DNA of 64,000 nt from Saccostrea cucullata (Eukaryota), in the NCBI RefSeq assembly GCF_032062105.1, contig NW_026928915.1, forward strand, positions 124,001-188,000, written 5' to 3'. Position 1 is the first letter of the stretch. Each line of letters begins with the position of its first letter. The position numbers and the translations under genes are program-made. The notes under the pieces were generated by a model. The model made no database searches and was not told the DNA's origin. It saw only the letters and a program-made list of their open reading frames with translations. Below are positions 3,959 through 17,800 of the stretch, piece by piece.

Positions 3959-5179
3959 TTACAATCGATGATGTCTATCCGGAACATCTCGCAGAAAAAT
4001 CAACTTTTTAAATCGTTTTTGGGCTTTCAATTTCATTTTTAAGTGCTGGTCCGTATTATCTTCTGGTTCTTTTAAGACATTTTTAAATGGCTCCAGTCGC
4101 ACCATAGGAGTAACATTCTGTCCTTGTTCACGACGGGGTAACTTCCCCACCTTTTTCTTGTCAAAAATCAACAGCTCATCATTCGGAGTTTGGTGTTCCG
4201 GAATGGCCACGAGCTGGGATTGCAGGTTGAGGACATTTCTTGGCGACTGTTTGGGGGGTGGGGAAGGCAGTGTTCGTTCACTCTTTGCCGATCTCTTTTG
4301 GGACGCCACGTCATTTTCAGGAATATCTGCGAGATCTGGTTTGTTTATCTGCATACGTTTGGCACGATTCGGTCTTCTTTTGAAAGCCTCCACATTCGCT
4401 TTATTTAAGTCTAAGCTATCACTATCAGTGTCTGAATTTTCAGAGTCTTGTTCTTTATCTGAACTTTCTATCGGTGGTAATGTTGGCAAAGTACTAAAGT
4501 CTTTAGGGATTTTAGGAGTTGGCGATTCATTGTTGGCACTTTTACTAAGGTTCCTAGAAGACTTTCTATTCCCTGCACCAGGTAGCGGCCGACCGGTAGG
4601 AGAGGGCGTGTGATTATGAATATTATCCATTTCTATGTATCTCAATGTGTCCTCCTTATTTCCCTTATTTCTTATACTAAAATCCACTATATCATATAAA
4701 TCTGAAGCACTCACAAAACTGATTTTCACTTGATGGGACTTTTTGTTATACCGTTCTGGTAGAGAAGGCAGGGATAGTCTTGAGGCTGATTTTGGCTTGT
4801 CTCTCCGAGGTTTGTTTGACTTTGACTTGGCATTCTTGCCTATGAGTTCATCAAATGATGCTGGTCTTCTATCCTTGTTTTTGGTTAGAGGTATCTTTGG
4901 AATATGTTTCGCTCTTACGTATAAGGGTGAATCACTGGATAACATCCCTTCAACACTATTTTTGGTGTTGGTCATCTTACGCATGCGCTCTGTATAAGCT
5001 AACATAGACTCCTTTAGGCCTCTTTCGCGATTTATCATTCTAGACAAAGAAACATCGAACTCTTTTTCATAATGTAAAAGTCGTCGATCATATTCCTGCT
5101 TCAGACGGGAGATCTGGGACGCTGCACGGTTTTCTGTTTGAAAAATTCCTGAACTACTTGAACTAGATGAAGAAGACAT
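3959..5179 (-). CDS. Uncharacterised 406-aa protein, single coding exon, largely low-complexity (S/P/K/R-rich) with a likely N-terminal coiled-coil
   Basis: 1221-nt open frame in AT-rich DNA. Strong acceptor (tctttcatttcag) opens the exon at 5294, 115 nt before the ATG. No domain recognised. Confidence 0.8.
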   Translation of the reverse strand: MSSSSSSSSSGIFQTENRAASQISRLKQEYDRRLLHYEKEFDVSLSRMINRERGLKESMLAYTERMRKMTNTKNSVEGMLSSDSPLYVRAKHIPKIPLTKNKDRRPASFDELIGKNAKSKSNKPRRDKPKSASRLSLPSLPERYNKKSHQVKISFVSASDLYDIVDFSIRNKGNKEDTLRYIEMDNIHNHTPSPTGRPLPGAGNRKSSRNLSKSANNESPTPKIPKDFSTLPTLPPIESSDKEQDSENSDTDSDSLDLNKANVEAFKRRPNRAKRMQINKPDLADIPENDVASQKRSAKSERTLPSPPPKQSPRNVLNLQSQLVAIPEHQTPNDELLIFDKKKVGKLPRREQGQNVTPMVRLEPFKNVLKEPEDNTDQHLKMKLKAQKRFKKLIFLRDVPDRHHRL

Positions 5180-12185: not shown

Positions 12186-13696
12186 TTGTTGTTTTTTTTA
12201 AATCTAGTTCCTTTAAGTCGTTTTACAACTTCAAATTAGCCCAATTATATTTCGGAAGAAGCAGTTTATATCCTGTGGTTGTGCATTTAAGTTTTGAAAC
12301 TACTTTCATCCTTGGACTGATTTGGGTTAAAATCAACCTTATTTGTATATGATTGTTGTTCTTCCCTTGTTATCAAAATGTGAAGATGGGTGCATTTAGA
12401 ATCAAACTTCTATGTGCAAATATTACTGTTGGATGATTCTGGTACACATATACATTGCTGTGAATGGACCTCTGTTATATTCTATAATCCGTTTTCATAT
12501 TACTATACAAAAAAAATTGGTATTTCTTATGCAAAATTTGCAAATGACAAATATTTGTCATGTACAAATGGTCCAGTATCAAAATTTATGTAAAAAACCT
12601 TATCCGAAGGCACAGAGATTTTTTTTTAAATACTAAGTATTGACAATAAAGAGAAAAAAGATAATTTTATCTTGGGTGAATGCCGAATAATTTATTCTCT
12701 GAATAAGAACTAATTCCATACATATTACATCAGGTTTTTAAATTTAGTGCCACACAAAATCTTTCCTTTGTAAAGCCTACTCAATAATTTCAGTTTATTT
12801 ATACATGAAAGCAATAAGACAACCCTTCTCAGCTATACAAATGTCATGGAAAACAAACAATCTCATTGATATGTAGCTCTTATTTATTAGGGAGAACGAA
12901 ATTGTCAATTTTATGTATTACACTGTGAGCAAGATTTTAACACATACTCTTTCACCTGCGGAAGCTTATCAAAATCTAATAGTTTCTCACCACTGAATAT
13001 AAAATGACAGAAAATCCATCACGTAAACTCGTTTAATTCGAAAAACTTGGTGACGATGAATGACATACGCCCTCTTTCAAAAAGTAAGGTGCCTATTAAC
13101 TCCACAGATTTCCACTTTTATATAGATGGTACGTGTATATTTGGCACAACATTTACATTTTCATTTGTGACCCTAAAGAGGCAAGAATTGAAGCTTTGTT
13201 TTCTTACAATGACAACTAAGATTACCTTCTCAACTTTGTTGTCCAGGATTTGGAAAGTCCTTCGTAAAAGTTTTAGACGTTGGGTTTTAAGTAGGAAACA
13301 AACATGGGTGGTTTGGATTCGGAATTTGTTCGTAAAAGTTCAGAAAGAGACAAAATTGATTGACAGAAAGGCGGACACGATTTGCAAAGCACTAATAGGA
13401 AATGAAATATTATTTGATATCACATTCTGTTTGACATATAAACTTGATATCCTCTCAAGATTAAATATAATTGTATAAAAGATTTCTTCTTTCGTGAAGT
13501 GCTCTTCTCTCACCAAAGTACAAGGACCTCCAGACAGCAACGTTCTCCAACCCATGAAAGAGACCCTTTTTTAGGGAGCCTTATATTTGTGGACGATATT
13601 TTGGTTTTCCTCAAAAGAGGTCACAAAATTCCAAGATAAGACTAAAGTGACTTGTATATTTCTTTGTCCCAAAAGTCAGTCTGTTATCTAACAAAT

Positions 13697-15085
13697 ATGA
13701 GGCTTCATTTACAAACCTTTGTGTTGTTTTTAATATGCTGTTTTGCCTTTTCAGGGGCGCTAAGAAGGTAACATTTGATCATAGCGTATGTATTTTTACA
13801 CAATAACTGTTGCAATCTTTAAGGTCCTTTATTATGTCAAGTGTCATCGGGGTATTGTTTTTTGTGTTCTATCTGTTAAAGCCAGTCTTGATTGACACCG
13901 TAGCTATTTTGAAACATGCTGTTTCATTGTTGATAAAATTTTGAGATCAAACGAAATACGGTTATACAGAGAATATTTCTTTTTATGGTTATTACGGTAA
14001 ATGCGATATTTTGTATGGTTATTACGATAAATACGATAGTCATTTTTTGTGACTGAAATTCAATTGAAATGAAACGAAACTTGTAAGAAAGGCCTTCACA
14101 TATTTTTCAATATGAAATAAAGTATATATCCCAAATACATGTTGTTCTATTTTGTTTATTTTATGTTGATTTTTCCTACAAATAAAAGAGCTGTAATTGT
14201 TTGGTTTTATTAAAGAAAACCTTTTCATTTTTAATGTGGCAACCCTACTACTTGCCATGTAAGTCGAGGGACCTCTGCTTTCCACAGAGTCCTACAACTT
14301 ACTTGTAAATGGCAATGACGTGTTTTTTTTTTTCATTTTGTAATGTAAAAAGACAGTTTGGCAGTATTCAATGCCAGTACTTTGGTTCAGTTCTTTCTGA
14401 AACATAATGTATTTGTTTATTCTTGAACGCTTGAATGTATTTTGCAGAAAATGGGGAGTTGTGGCCCAATCTTGACGCTTGTACGTCAAATGTTTCAAAC
14501 ATTTTATTGATATGTTTTTTTCAATATCGATACGAATTTTTGTTTGAAGGAAGAGAGAATGGTGTAGACCAGTAGATACTGAGTCACAATGCATGCTTGG
14601 TATCTTGGGTAGCTCTTGTCACATGAAGGATGACATGTGTTGTTGTCCACCTATTTTTCCAGGTATGTTACAAAAAAGGACACAGGATATAGGTATTTAC
14701 TGTACGTTTCTATCTTTCTGAGGAACAGAATTAAAAAAAAAAATAAGAACGTTACAAATACTACTATACTATAATTATCAATATATATTCAATAAAAGTA
14801 GTTTTTATATTGCTTTATAATTTTTTTTAATTATAATTTATGCACAACGTTTCATTAGTGTAAATAAGAGAAAATAAGCTATTTCTAAGTCAAGATTTAT
14901 CAGAGAACGTTTGCTGTTAATCTAAATGAGATATTTAACTTCTCCTTTTATCAGGTAAGAGAGAGGCGGGTCACTGTGCTATGGTGTGGGACTGGGTGTG
15001 TCCCCCTAACTGTGAGATGGTGAGGGACTGTCGGACTAGGTGTAACATGCCTGGGGAGTACTGTTGTTGGTGTGCCTCATCTTAA
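13697..15085 (+). CDS. Secreted dual Cys-rich peptide precursor 1 (104 aa, 3 exons)
   Basis: Exons 13697-13767, 14550-14662, 14955-15085; GT-AG introns, phases 2 and 1. Translation MRLHLQTFVLFLICCFAFSGALRRKR-EWCRPVDTESQCMLGILGSSCHMKDDMCCCPPIFP-GKR-EAGHCAMVWDWVCPPNCEMVRDCRTRCNMPGEYCCWCASS*. AATAAA at 15091. Same exon structure as the neighbouring paralogue. Confidence 0.88.
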
Positions 15086-16185
15086 CAACGAATAAAAATA
15101 TTGTCATAAAACTGTTCTTTTGGATCTCTTTAACTCATTTCTGTTTTATCATGATGCTTGTTTGTTTTTTAAAAAGATATATCATGCATTGCTACAGATG
15201 TATTTTCAATCCTTAGTATATTTTTTGTCTGTCTGCATTGTTTTAAAATGCTTTAGGTCTAAAAATCAGTGAGTATTAAACAATTAAAGTATATTAGATG
15301 AGAAGTTGTAAAAGATGATGTTGCTTTAGGTTATATGGCCATTTTTGTCCATGTTTTAACCTTCGTGTTCCTTAACAGTGTCTTTGACCTTGGCTATTCT
15401 CAAATGTAACGCTAATAAAATAGAGACTGTAAAATTTGTTGAAAACCATGCATGCCTCGTTGAAAAAGATCAAAATATATAACAAACTTACTGAAATCTC
15501 AATTAAATCAAATCATGCAAACATGTTCATCAAAGCGGCCTTCTCTAATTGAAATAAGAAAAGTCCTACCGCTTTCTAAGAAAATGCTTAAAATTAGAAG
15601 CATTTCAAGGAGCATAAGGTGTCATCAAAACAAACCTTGGTATGTAACGTCCTAATGAAACAGAGGAAGAGAAATAACCACTTGTTGTATATGGTCTTCT
15701 AGCTATATTTATTACAAGTTAGTTATGTCTCTTCCATTTGTAATATTTATTTTCATTTCAGTCCATGACTCTTTCTCTTTTTTTTTTGAAATATAAAGTA
15801 TTTCTTAAAAATGAAATAAATATGATAATAATTGTATCCACTTCATATCATGCTGCTTGAATTTTAAATTTACTCTTGACGCCATTTTTAATTTCATATC
15901 ATGACAGAAAATTCATTCCAAAAGTTTTGTGTACTATTTAAGATATAAACATACAATTAAGATTTTTTTTTTTTAGATTTATCTGATTTTTCCTCGATCT
16001 ATTGGTATGATCCCTGCTTTATTTTATTGATAGTCTAATCAATTCTTAGATTCTTATTTATGTGTTTTTAACAACATATAATCAAAAAATTACCACTCCT
16101 TCTGCAGAGAGATTTGTCTAGTTAGAATTAGGCCAAGTTCCTAAAGTCGCCTGTAATCTCTATACGTGGACTGATTTCACAAAAA

Positions 16186-17375
16186 ATGAAGCCTGTTCAA
16201 ATTCTGATTCTTTTGGCTTTTGTTGTCGTGGCTCATTCAGCTCGTTGGTAAGATATATTAATCTTTCTTTTTTAAAAGCATTTGAAATTAATTTATTTTT
16301 TAAAAAATCTCAAGGATGACAGAATGGACATGCAGATTCCCCTTAATTCAATTCTTTTAATAATTTGAATAAAGAAATTATTTTGCTTTACCTGAAAAAA
16401 AGAACCAATAATATTAATATTGAATTGTTTTATTGCTTGAAACATCTTAAATAAGCTACAGCATTACATATACCTTTAGTAAGGCATGCATTTATTTTCA
16501 GGACTCGTGAAGACTGTCATTATGCAGAAACAGAAGAGGCTTGTAAATCTGTTTACCTTGGTTACCGATGTCATTTTTCTGTAGATGATAACAGATGTTG
16601 CTGCCCACGTATATTTCCAGGTACAAAAGTTAATTAAACTAGAGTTTTAATTAATTAAAAAATGATTAGACCTTACGGACCGATAGTTAAATGAAAGTAC
16701 ATGTACATTCAAATTCTTACGAAAGAAAAAAATAATATATCTGTAAACGAAGTAGAGTGTATCGCTCGAATACGTTACTTATTATGTTATATATTATCAT
16801 TGAGTTCTGTTTTAAGTTTATATTGATAGGATTGCAAAACTTTCTATGAAAGCAATTTCAATTTTTATCTAGCTGCACTTAATGCACATAACAAAATTTT
16901 TTTGTAGAAAATTGTTTAGTTTATTAGTTCTATACTTACTTATATATTAGAAACGCACTAAAGTAACCATATTTTGACTACATTCTGCTTGTGTTCAGGA
17001 AATTAATTTCACCAAACTGCTTTATTCTTTGAGCGTTTTCTGTGCTGGTAGTAATACTCGAAGTTTTTATTTTTGGAAATTTCGAAACCACCAACACTTT
17101 GGTTGAGAAAATTGCTACACAAATTACTCTTAGCCAATGGTAGCAAAGTTTCGGACCATATCACTATTAAGATTTTCAGTTTGACCAGGGTCACTTAATA
17201 AACTTTGCAACTGTAAATTCTTTAATGTAATAATGTACATTTTGTGTCCTACTAAGTTACATTTTTAACAGGTAAAAGAACATTCCCTTGCTTTGGGAAA
17301 GACGAAAGCCATTGTCATTTACCTTGTCATATGACAGAGGATGGGACCTGCTGTTGGTGTCCACTGGTTGGTTAA
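16186..17375 (+). CDS. Secreted dual Cys-rich peptide precursor 2 (94 aa, 3 exons)
   Basis: Exons 16186-16247, 16502-16620, 17272-17375; GT-AG introns, phases 2 and 1. Translation MKPVQILILLAFVVVAHSARWTREDCHYAETEEACKSVYLGYRCHFSVDDNRCCCPRIFP-GKR-TFPCFGKDESHCHLPCHMTEDGTCCWCPLVG*. Confidence 0.88.
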
Positions 17376-17484
17376 AATATGTCACGTGGTCTGCATTTGC
17401 ATTCGACATAATTTTCACTTTATAAATAGTTACAACCATTTTTATGTGGTTTTAATTTATATGTATGAAATTCACAGCAGTTGG

Positions 17485-17800
17485 GATATAATGACCTCGT
17501 CAGCAAATACATTTTATCATTGAGTCAAATGCTGACTGACATTTTTCATACCAATTGTTAGTCCATTATTTATACACTGAATTGACGCCGGACCGATCTT
17601 TCCGTTATTTCCCGATCGTGACAAAGAACACACGGCGGGTGTGACCGGTCGGCAAGGAATGCTCACTCCTCCATGGCACTTGATCCCACCTCTGATGTTT
17701 TGGAGGTCCAAAAAAAAAGAGGTTTGCTCTGCTCCTAATTTGTATTGTTTTATGGACTTTGATATTGAATACTGTTCGTTATCTCAATATATTTCATTGC
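17485..17800 (+). mobile_element. Penelope-like 3' fragment
   Basis: Well-preserved copy of the ORF end and 3' tail (gagtcaaatgctgactgac...ggcgggtgtgaccggtcggcaaggaatgctcactcctccatggcac...). Confidence 0.8.

Follow-up and report, generated by a model that had tools for sequence, protein, structure and literature searches.

A conserved tandem gene pair in oysters encodes candidate prohormone-like precursors of two disulfide-rich peptides

Introduction

In the vasopressin-type precursor of the oyster Crassostrea gigas, the hormone is followed directly by the tripeptide Gly-Lys-Arg (GKR) (PMC8557429 supplement). The CCWamide or agatoxin-like precursors are short and encoded by three exons, with the signal peptide in exon 1 and a Cys-rich, sometimes amidated peptide in the last exon (PMC8557429). 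Their framework is C-C-CC-C-C-C-C with an aromatic-amide end, their upstream peptide is not conserved, their intron phases are 1 and then 2, and a basic codon is split (PMC8557429). Cragi-GSWN and Cragi-CCCGS of C. gigas are mollusc-restricted secreted orphan precursors with one or more Cys-rich peptides and low expression in ganglia, and GSWN is described as holding a potentially amidated Cys-rich peptide together with a second Cys-rich peptide (PMC8398477). The CRP-I family of Mytilus has the array C(X3-6)C(X1-7)CC(X3-4)C(X3-5)C and four exons, and its mature region is hypervariable, under positive selection, and subject to massive presence/absence variation (PMC10138031). Here we compare with these systems a tandem pair of small genes, gene 1 and gene 2, found between positions 13697 and 17375 of a 64,000-nucleotide stretch of the genome of the hooded oyster, Saccostrea cucullata (assembly GCF_032062105.1, contig NW_026928915.1, positions 124,001 to 188,000). 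The whole of this stretch is referred to as the window.

Oysters are major aquaculture and reef-building animals whose peptide signalling repertoire is still being catalogued. On balance, the sequences incline us to the view that the two genes encode Ostreidae-restricted, prohormone-like precursors, each of which would yield two disulfide-rich peptides serving signalling more likely than defence. Gene 1 is already annotated as uncharacterized; gene 2 is absent from the gene and protein lists searched.

Gene models and encoded peptides

Both genes are missing from the open reading frames (ORFs) listed for the window, because the longest plain ORFs across their exons reach only 34-46 aa. The interval 13500-17600 was read by hand and by script with translation of the exons, and the region is without Ns. 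The two three-exon models, with their Cys frames and intron phases, read as had been claimed in a preliminary description of this DNA:

Gene 1 exon 1, 13697..13767, + strand: start codon, signal peptide, and first part of RRKR, with a phase-2 GT donor; the N-terminus of XP_062617518.1
Gene 1 exon 2, 14550..14662, + strand: rest of RRKR, peptide I (35 aa, 6 Cys, ending CCC-P-P-I-F-P), and base 1 of the Gly codon
Gene 1 exon 3, 14955..15085, + strand: bases 2-3 of the Gly codon, Lys-Arg, peptide II (40 aa, 8 Cys, ending CCWC-ASS), and TAA at 15083-15085
Gene 1 polyadenylation signal AATAAA, 15091..15096, + strand: 6 nt past the stop
Gene 2 exon 1, 16186..16247, + strand: start codon and signal peptide, with the phase-2 donor tg/gtaag kept in six of six species
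Gene 2 exon 2, 16502..16620, + strand: Trp completed, T-R (R-x-x-R site), peptide I (37 aa, 6 Cys, ending CCC-P-R-I-F-P), and base 1 of the Gly codon
Gene 2 exon 3, 17272..17375, + strand: Gly completed, Lys-Arg, peptide II (6 Cys, ending CCWC-PLV), C-terminal Gly at 17370-17372, and TAA stop

All four introns are GT..AG, in phase 2 and then phase 1 in both genes; the splice junctions rest on RefSeq models and on cross-species conservation. Each precursor is about 95-105 aa long. The first exon of both genes encodes M-K/R, a hydrophobic core of 12-15 residues, and small residues near the end (70% hydrophobic, by inspection), and this signal exon is retained in six of six oyster species. Both gene products very probably enter the secretory pathway. 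The AATAAA signal of gene 1 lies 6-115 nt past the stop in five of five oyster species.

Peptide I has the framework C-x8-C-x8-C-x6/8-CCC-P-x-I-F-P in both genes. Its I-F-P end, at first taken to be fixed, is so in the S. cucullata pair and reads I-F/Y-P among the gene 1 orthologues. Peptide II ends in CC-W-C in both genes, with 8 Cys in gene 1 and 6 in gene 2, and the 6 Cys of gene 2 align with the last 6 of gene 1 (C-x5/7-C-x3-C-x6/7-CC-W-C). The Cys count is even in every peptide. His residues are also conserved: the third Cys of peptide I is invariably followed by one, and gene 2 peptide II contains the sequence H-C-H-L-P-C-H-M. All four S. cucullata peptides are anionic (net charge, -2 to -3), none being neutral as the preliminary description had allowed; across the peptides computed, net charge is -1 to -4 and the isoelectric point (pI) 4.3-6.3.

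Conservation, synteny, and selection

The spliced gene 1 product is, letter for letter, RefSeq XP_062617518.1, an "uncharacterized protein" of S. cucullata. Annotated orthologues of gene 1 were found in Saccostrea echinata (XP_061174763.1, "uncharacterized"), C. gigas, Crassostrea angulata, Crassostrea virginica, and Ostrea edulis. The C. gigas gene (locus L013:10001-11160) has been automatically named 'Tie-1 receptor'. We regard this name as an artefact because no gene 1 orthologue has a kinase, an EGF, or any other Pfam domain; a literature search for 'Tie-1' in oysters gave nothing relevant.

Gene 2 lies directly downstream of gene 1, in synteny, in all five other oyster genomes, and the five loci share a neighbourhood with a gene of 406-410 aa upstream on the opposite strand and genes of 241-245 aa downstream. 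Exon boundaries and phases of both genes are the same in these genomes, with the exception of exon 3 of C. virginica gene 2. The Cys frame and RRKR of gene 1 are invariant in five species.

Nei-Gojobori counts were made per exon for all species pairs. Synonymous differences were 0.27-1.2 per site over all pairs and mostly 0.5-1.2 between genera, which is at or near saturation, and non-synonymous differences were 0.00-0.22 per site. The ratio of non-synonymous to synonymous change (dN/dS, or omega) between S. cucullata and S. echinata was 0.085 and 0.022 in gene 1 and 0.00 and 0.014 in gene 2. In the same species pair, the peptide I encoded by gene 2 exon 2 is 100% identical as protein despite 8 synonymous changes, and the flanking non-coding DNA has only about 70% identity. 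Purifying selection on both genes is strong; this is the outcome of the dN/dS comparison across orthologues that had been suggested beforehand as a check. The strong divergence of residues between the Cys positions, which had also been reported, applies to the paralogues alone (49% identity in peptide I between gene 1 and gene 2), and the orthologues are strongly conserved. Selection and synteny exclude a pseudogene or a chance ORF, and the gene pair is almost certainly real, conserved, and functional.

A peptide I tree places the sequences of gene 1 and of gene 2 in separate clades with 100/100 support, and therefore the duplication is older than the split of the sampled genera. Full-length profile searches of protein collections with gene 1 returned oyster orthologues and nothing else, and an exhaustive profile search that used the exon-2 peptides of both genes found the gene 1 cluster and, besides it, a single spurious repeat protein. 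Apart from this spurious hit, the family was seen in no non-oyster sequence among the protein collections searched. A family of ancient duplicates, restricted to Ostreidae as far as seen, is the best reading of these results.

Gene 2 constitutes an annotation gap, for it is as conserved as any neuropeptide gene and yet is not among the called genes at any of the five orthologous loci. A protein search with the open frame around its exon 2 gave no match, the exon-2 peptide profile found no second cluster (for gene 2) in the representative protein library, and no protein of 33-105 aa in a collection of 5.8 billion shares even three 5-mers with its peptide I. Gene 2 was analysed exon by exon, and the full-length analyses used gene 1 database proteins only.

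Exon 3 of C. virginica gene 2 (L015:13300-13445) is aberrant: the ancestral acceptor and the GKR position are degraded, and a TAA stands in the Cys frame. With one acceptor, G-K-R is restored and followed by eight residues and a stop, so that peptide II is lost; with an acceptor 5 nt downstream, the product is a fused chain that lacks GKR and has 5 Cys. The frame encoding CCWC..G-K-stop is still open.

Processing signals and proposed maturation

The GKR after peptide I in both genes and the RRKR of gene 1, to which the preliminary description had drawn attention, are present and conserved across oysters. Of the 12 gene copies in six species, 11 have GKR between the peptides. The Gly codon of this site is split by the phase-1 intron and is spelled GGT, GGG, GGA, or GGC; since the Gly is kept through four synonymous spellings, selection acts on the amino acid. 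RRKR precedes peptide I in gene 1, and A-R-W-T-R or A-K-W-R-R stands in gene 2 ahead of the same Glu, and therefore both mature forms of peptide I would begin with Glu.

The C-terminus of gene 2 reads PLVG-stop in Saccostrea, PLVGK-stop in C. gigas and C. angulata, PLG-stop in Ostrea, and PIGK-stop in the C. virginica frame. A chain that ends in Gly or Gly-Lys carries the classical amide donor (PAM, carboxypeptidase E). This terminus would be a second amidation signal, conserved in all species, which was overlooked when the DNA was first read. The fulicin precursor of C. gigas contains repeated ...FLGKR units, and amidated ...EFL-NH2 peptides have been detected by mass spectrometry (PMC8398477 supplement), from which it follows that oysters use GKR sites for amidation. 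Exons of a copper type II monooxygenase (PHM/DBH family) were found in the S. cucullata genome; they support amidation weakly, as the family also includes DBH-like enzymes.

We propose the following course of maturation. After removal of the signal peptide, an enzyme of furin or prohormone-convertase type would cut behind the basic site (RRKR in gene 1; R-W-T-R or K-W-R-R in gene 2), leaving Glu at the start of peptide I. A second cut at Gly-Lys-Arg, followed by carboxypeptidase trimming and the action of peptidylglycine amidating monooxygenase, would release peptide I as a chain of 35 or 37 aa with three disulfides and a Pro-amide end. Peptide II, with 6 or 8 Cys and a short tail after CCWC, would come free as a folded peptide of its own, which in gene 2 would also be amidated through its C-terminal Gly or Gly-Lys. 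The products would then serve endogenous signalling through a specific receptor, with peptide II acting as a second ligand or as a co-packaged carrier.

The two-peptide, amidated-product model is the best reading of the sequences and a reasonably probable one. The proposal of two-peptide processing has gained from the conservation of its signals across species and from the terminal Gly(-Lys) of gene 2; that the products are released is what we infer from sequence. The C-C-C-CCC framework with its predicted Pro-amide end is without match in Pfam, solved structures, or the literature searched; this, the strong constraint across oyster genera, and the amidation signals make the family a candidate lineage-specific hormone or secreted regulator. 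A signalling role, be it as hormone, neuropeptide, or paracrine factor, is preferred to defence tentatively, at somewhat less than even confidence. More speculative still is a lineage-specific hormone system predating the Ostrea/Crassostrea/Saccostrea split, in which four folded peptides, three of them amidated, might act on receptors of their own or as ligand plus dedicated carrier.

Structure and family searches

No Pfam family was matched at E up to 10 by any exon peptide or full-length orthologue, and PDB sequences gave no match better than E 0.4. The full-length AlphaFold model of gene 1 is poor (predicted local distance difference test [pLDDT], 59.8), and the GKR linker is the lowest-confidence stretch of this poor model. 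Peptide I alone was modelled with moderate confidence (pLDDT, 74.5) as strand-helix-strand-strand, and the model found no convincing fold match (Foldseek, E > 7; VIA-align, Z <= 2.8; Atlas, none). Its neighbours in a language-model search belong to toxin or defensin clusters, with a best score of 0.77 that is under the noise level of the tool. Peptide motifs and accession numbers were without match in a literature search, which also gave no peptidomic record of the motifs. The earlier statement that the frameworks fit none of several known bivalve families can be extended, as no characterised family was matched in Pfam, PDB sequences, fold searches, or literature text. Membership in the defensin, big defensin, knottin, and conotoxin families of Pfam was rejected, as none was matched and as defensins are cationic and the peptides here anionic.

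Copies, upstream motifs, and neighbouring genes

Genome-wide searches covered the S. cucullata assembly of 1.17 Gb in 23,869 contigs. Matches to exon 2 were confined to the window pair and a second pair on contig C19695, whose gene 1 product is XP_062586783.1 ("uncharacterized"). The second pair is an allelic haplotig, with 98.2% identity across 7 kb, and the alleles have 6 synonymous and 2 non-synonymous differences in 600 coding bases. Between its gene 1 and gene 2, the haplotig carries a 5.8-kb insertion (C19695:26073-31900; insertion point at about window position 15937), which holds a 458-aa reverse-transcriptase/RNase H-like ORF and is retrotransposon-like. The spacer between the two genes is also about 4.4 kb longer in C. 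angulata than in C. gigas.

A profile search of the genome added only one decayed 22-residue fragment of gene 1 peptide I. Found at C5964:11320-11385 and C13029:29777-29842, it consists of the first 22 residues, with the first Cys changed to Ser and without the CCC part, and it adjoins a helicase-like ORF on the opposite strand. It is probably a pseudo-exon carried by a mobile element.

Alignment of the 220 nt before the ATG in five species revealed two motifs that are invariant in five oysters and surrounded by poorly conserved DNA:

AGATAAG, a GATA-type motif, 13634..13640, + strand: 63 nt upstream of the gene 1 ATG
GGCCAAGT motif, 16131..16138, + strand: 55 nt upstream of the gene 2 ATG

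A scan for bacterial promoters and terminators stayed at shuffle level and is irrelevant to an animal gene.

The gene upstream of the pair is, in the window, a 406-aa single-exon ORF on the minus strand (3959-5179) that is rich in Ser, Lys, and Pro. It is syntenic, at 406-410 aa, in six of six oysters, and no Pfam match is on record for its orthologues. Elsewhere in the window, two intronless ORFs, of 736 and 738 aa, lie in tandem (44651-46861 and 50914-53130) and are clearly paralogous, with an F-box-like N-terminus and a leucine-rich-repeat-like appearance by eye.

Alternative explanations

Several observations weigh against amidated signalling peptides as the products of the pair. Where a protein is compact and disulfide-rich, a dibasic site can go uncut, and the aberrant exon 3 of C. 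virginica gene 2 may cost that gene its GKR or its peptide II. The absence of gene 2 from every annotation searched suggests that its expression is low or very restricted. No transcript-sized contig with the exact orthologous proteins was found. In a thorough neuropeptide survey of C. gigas visceral ganglia, the precursor is not listed and its motifs do not occur in the supplements (PMC8398477), which makes expression in neurons doubtful. This absence and the gap in annotation argue against a classical ganglionic neuropeptide; the genes may be expressed weakly, or in certain cells or stages only. A first alternative is an uncleaved, two-domain secreted protein of about 80 aa, with GKR as a surface linker, which might be a binding protein, an inhibitor, or a matrix or cement component. 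Both halves are conserved together in every species, gene 1 counts as a single protein in the Gnomon models and in all searches, and one possible splice form of C. virginica gene 2 fuses the halves without GKR. Such a protein, which would be an ordinary small orphan secreted protein, is nevertheless unlikely: the Gly before Lys-Arg, the terminal Gly(-Lys) of gene 2, and the basic sites fit the needs of amidation and of convertases without obvious structural reason, and each half has an even Cys count. Even Cys counts also permit each half to fold independently, which speaks against cleaved chains that stay together, either as an insulin-like disulfide heterodimer or with peptide II as a neurophysin-like non-covalent carrier or chaperone. 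The layout mirrors that of vasopressin-type precursors and the two halves are always co-encoded, but neither half resembles neurophysin or insulin in Pfam, and use of the canonical acceptor in C. virginica gene 2 would leave peptide I in place without peptide II; we consider this arrangement improbable.

The preliminary description had left room for toxin-like or defence peptides, and here the results turn the other way, in favour of a conserved endogenous role. Host-defence or toxin-like effectors, whether antimicrobial, anti-predator, or anti-fouling, could come from epithelia or haemocytes, as do other Cys-rich peptides of bivalves. Small, secreted, Cys-rich peptides in a multi-peptide precursor would suit them, as would the invariant GATA-type motif upstream of gene 1, given that in many animals genes of the gut and of blood cells are driven by GATA factors, and the toxin and defensin clusters among the language-model neighbours point the same way, but with scores below noise. 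All the peptides, though, are acidic throughout the pI range given above, none matches a defensin, knottin, or toxin family in Pfam, and a single-copy, syntenic locus under purifying selection is the opposite of the hypervariability of mussel CRP-I (PMC10138031). We judge effectors of this kind to be quite unlikely, if slightly less so than chains that remain associated. The strong constraint, the single-copy synteny, and the acidic charge lead us to prefer signalling to defence. Metal binding, by which secreted peptides rich in Cys, His, and Met would take care of the Cu or Zn that oysters accumulate, draws on the conserved C-H, H-C-H, and C-H-M clusters. It is very improbable: with a signal peptide and an even number of Cys per peptide, oxidised disulfides are to be expected, metal binding would not account for the amidation and convertase signals, and Pfam searches gave no metallothionein similarity.

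Comparison with known peptide systems

The oyster pair and CRP-I of Mytilus have in common that they are bivalve, secreted, and Cys-rich and carry a dibasic processing site; some CRP-I members are multi-array, with amidation predicted. The oyster genes differ in their arrays, in having three exons, and in being single-copy and under strong purifying selection. Membership in CRP-I was rejected on account of the arrays, of omega values of 0-0.09 in Saccostrea, and of a locus syntenic in six species. GSWN and CCCGS resemble the pair as secreted mollusc precursors that hold at least one Cys-rich peptide. The oyster pair lacks the motifs that define GSWN and CCCGS, and it is set apart from both by motifs and descriptions, not by alignment.

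CCWamide precursors, considered for their name and three-exon layout, share with the oyster pair the three exons and a processing site at the last exon junction. The oyster genes differ from them in having phases 2 then 1, a split Gly codon with Lys-Arg wholly in the last exon, the frameworks C-C-C-CCC and C-C-C-(C-C-)CC-x-C, and an upstream peptide that is the best conserved part. Compared with the CCWamide sequences of C. virginica, Lottia, and Platynereis, both framework and C-terminus differ, and oysters carry a separate, true CCWamide gene. Identity with CCWamide was rejected on framework, W-amide end, upstream peptide, and intron phases.

Vasopressin-type precursors differ from the oyster pair in sequence, with no similarity at that level or in Pfam and no match to the neurophysin family, and in the restriction of the pair to oysters as far as seen. 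Peptide I has 35-37 aa and 6 Cys, compared with 9 aa and 2 Cys in the vasopressin-type hormone. Neurophysin has about 90 aa and 14 Cys, unlike the C-terminal part of the oyster precursors, which has 30-45 aa and 6-8 Cys. With no neurophysin domain past GKR, identity as a neurophysin precursor was rejected. The order of parts is nevertheless the same, in that a signal peptide, a disulfide peptide with an amidation donor, GKR, and a Cys-rich C-terminal part are encoded in one chain, and in this sense the hormone-GKR-neurophysin layout is the closest analogy in logic to the oyster gene pair.

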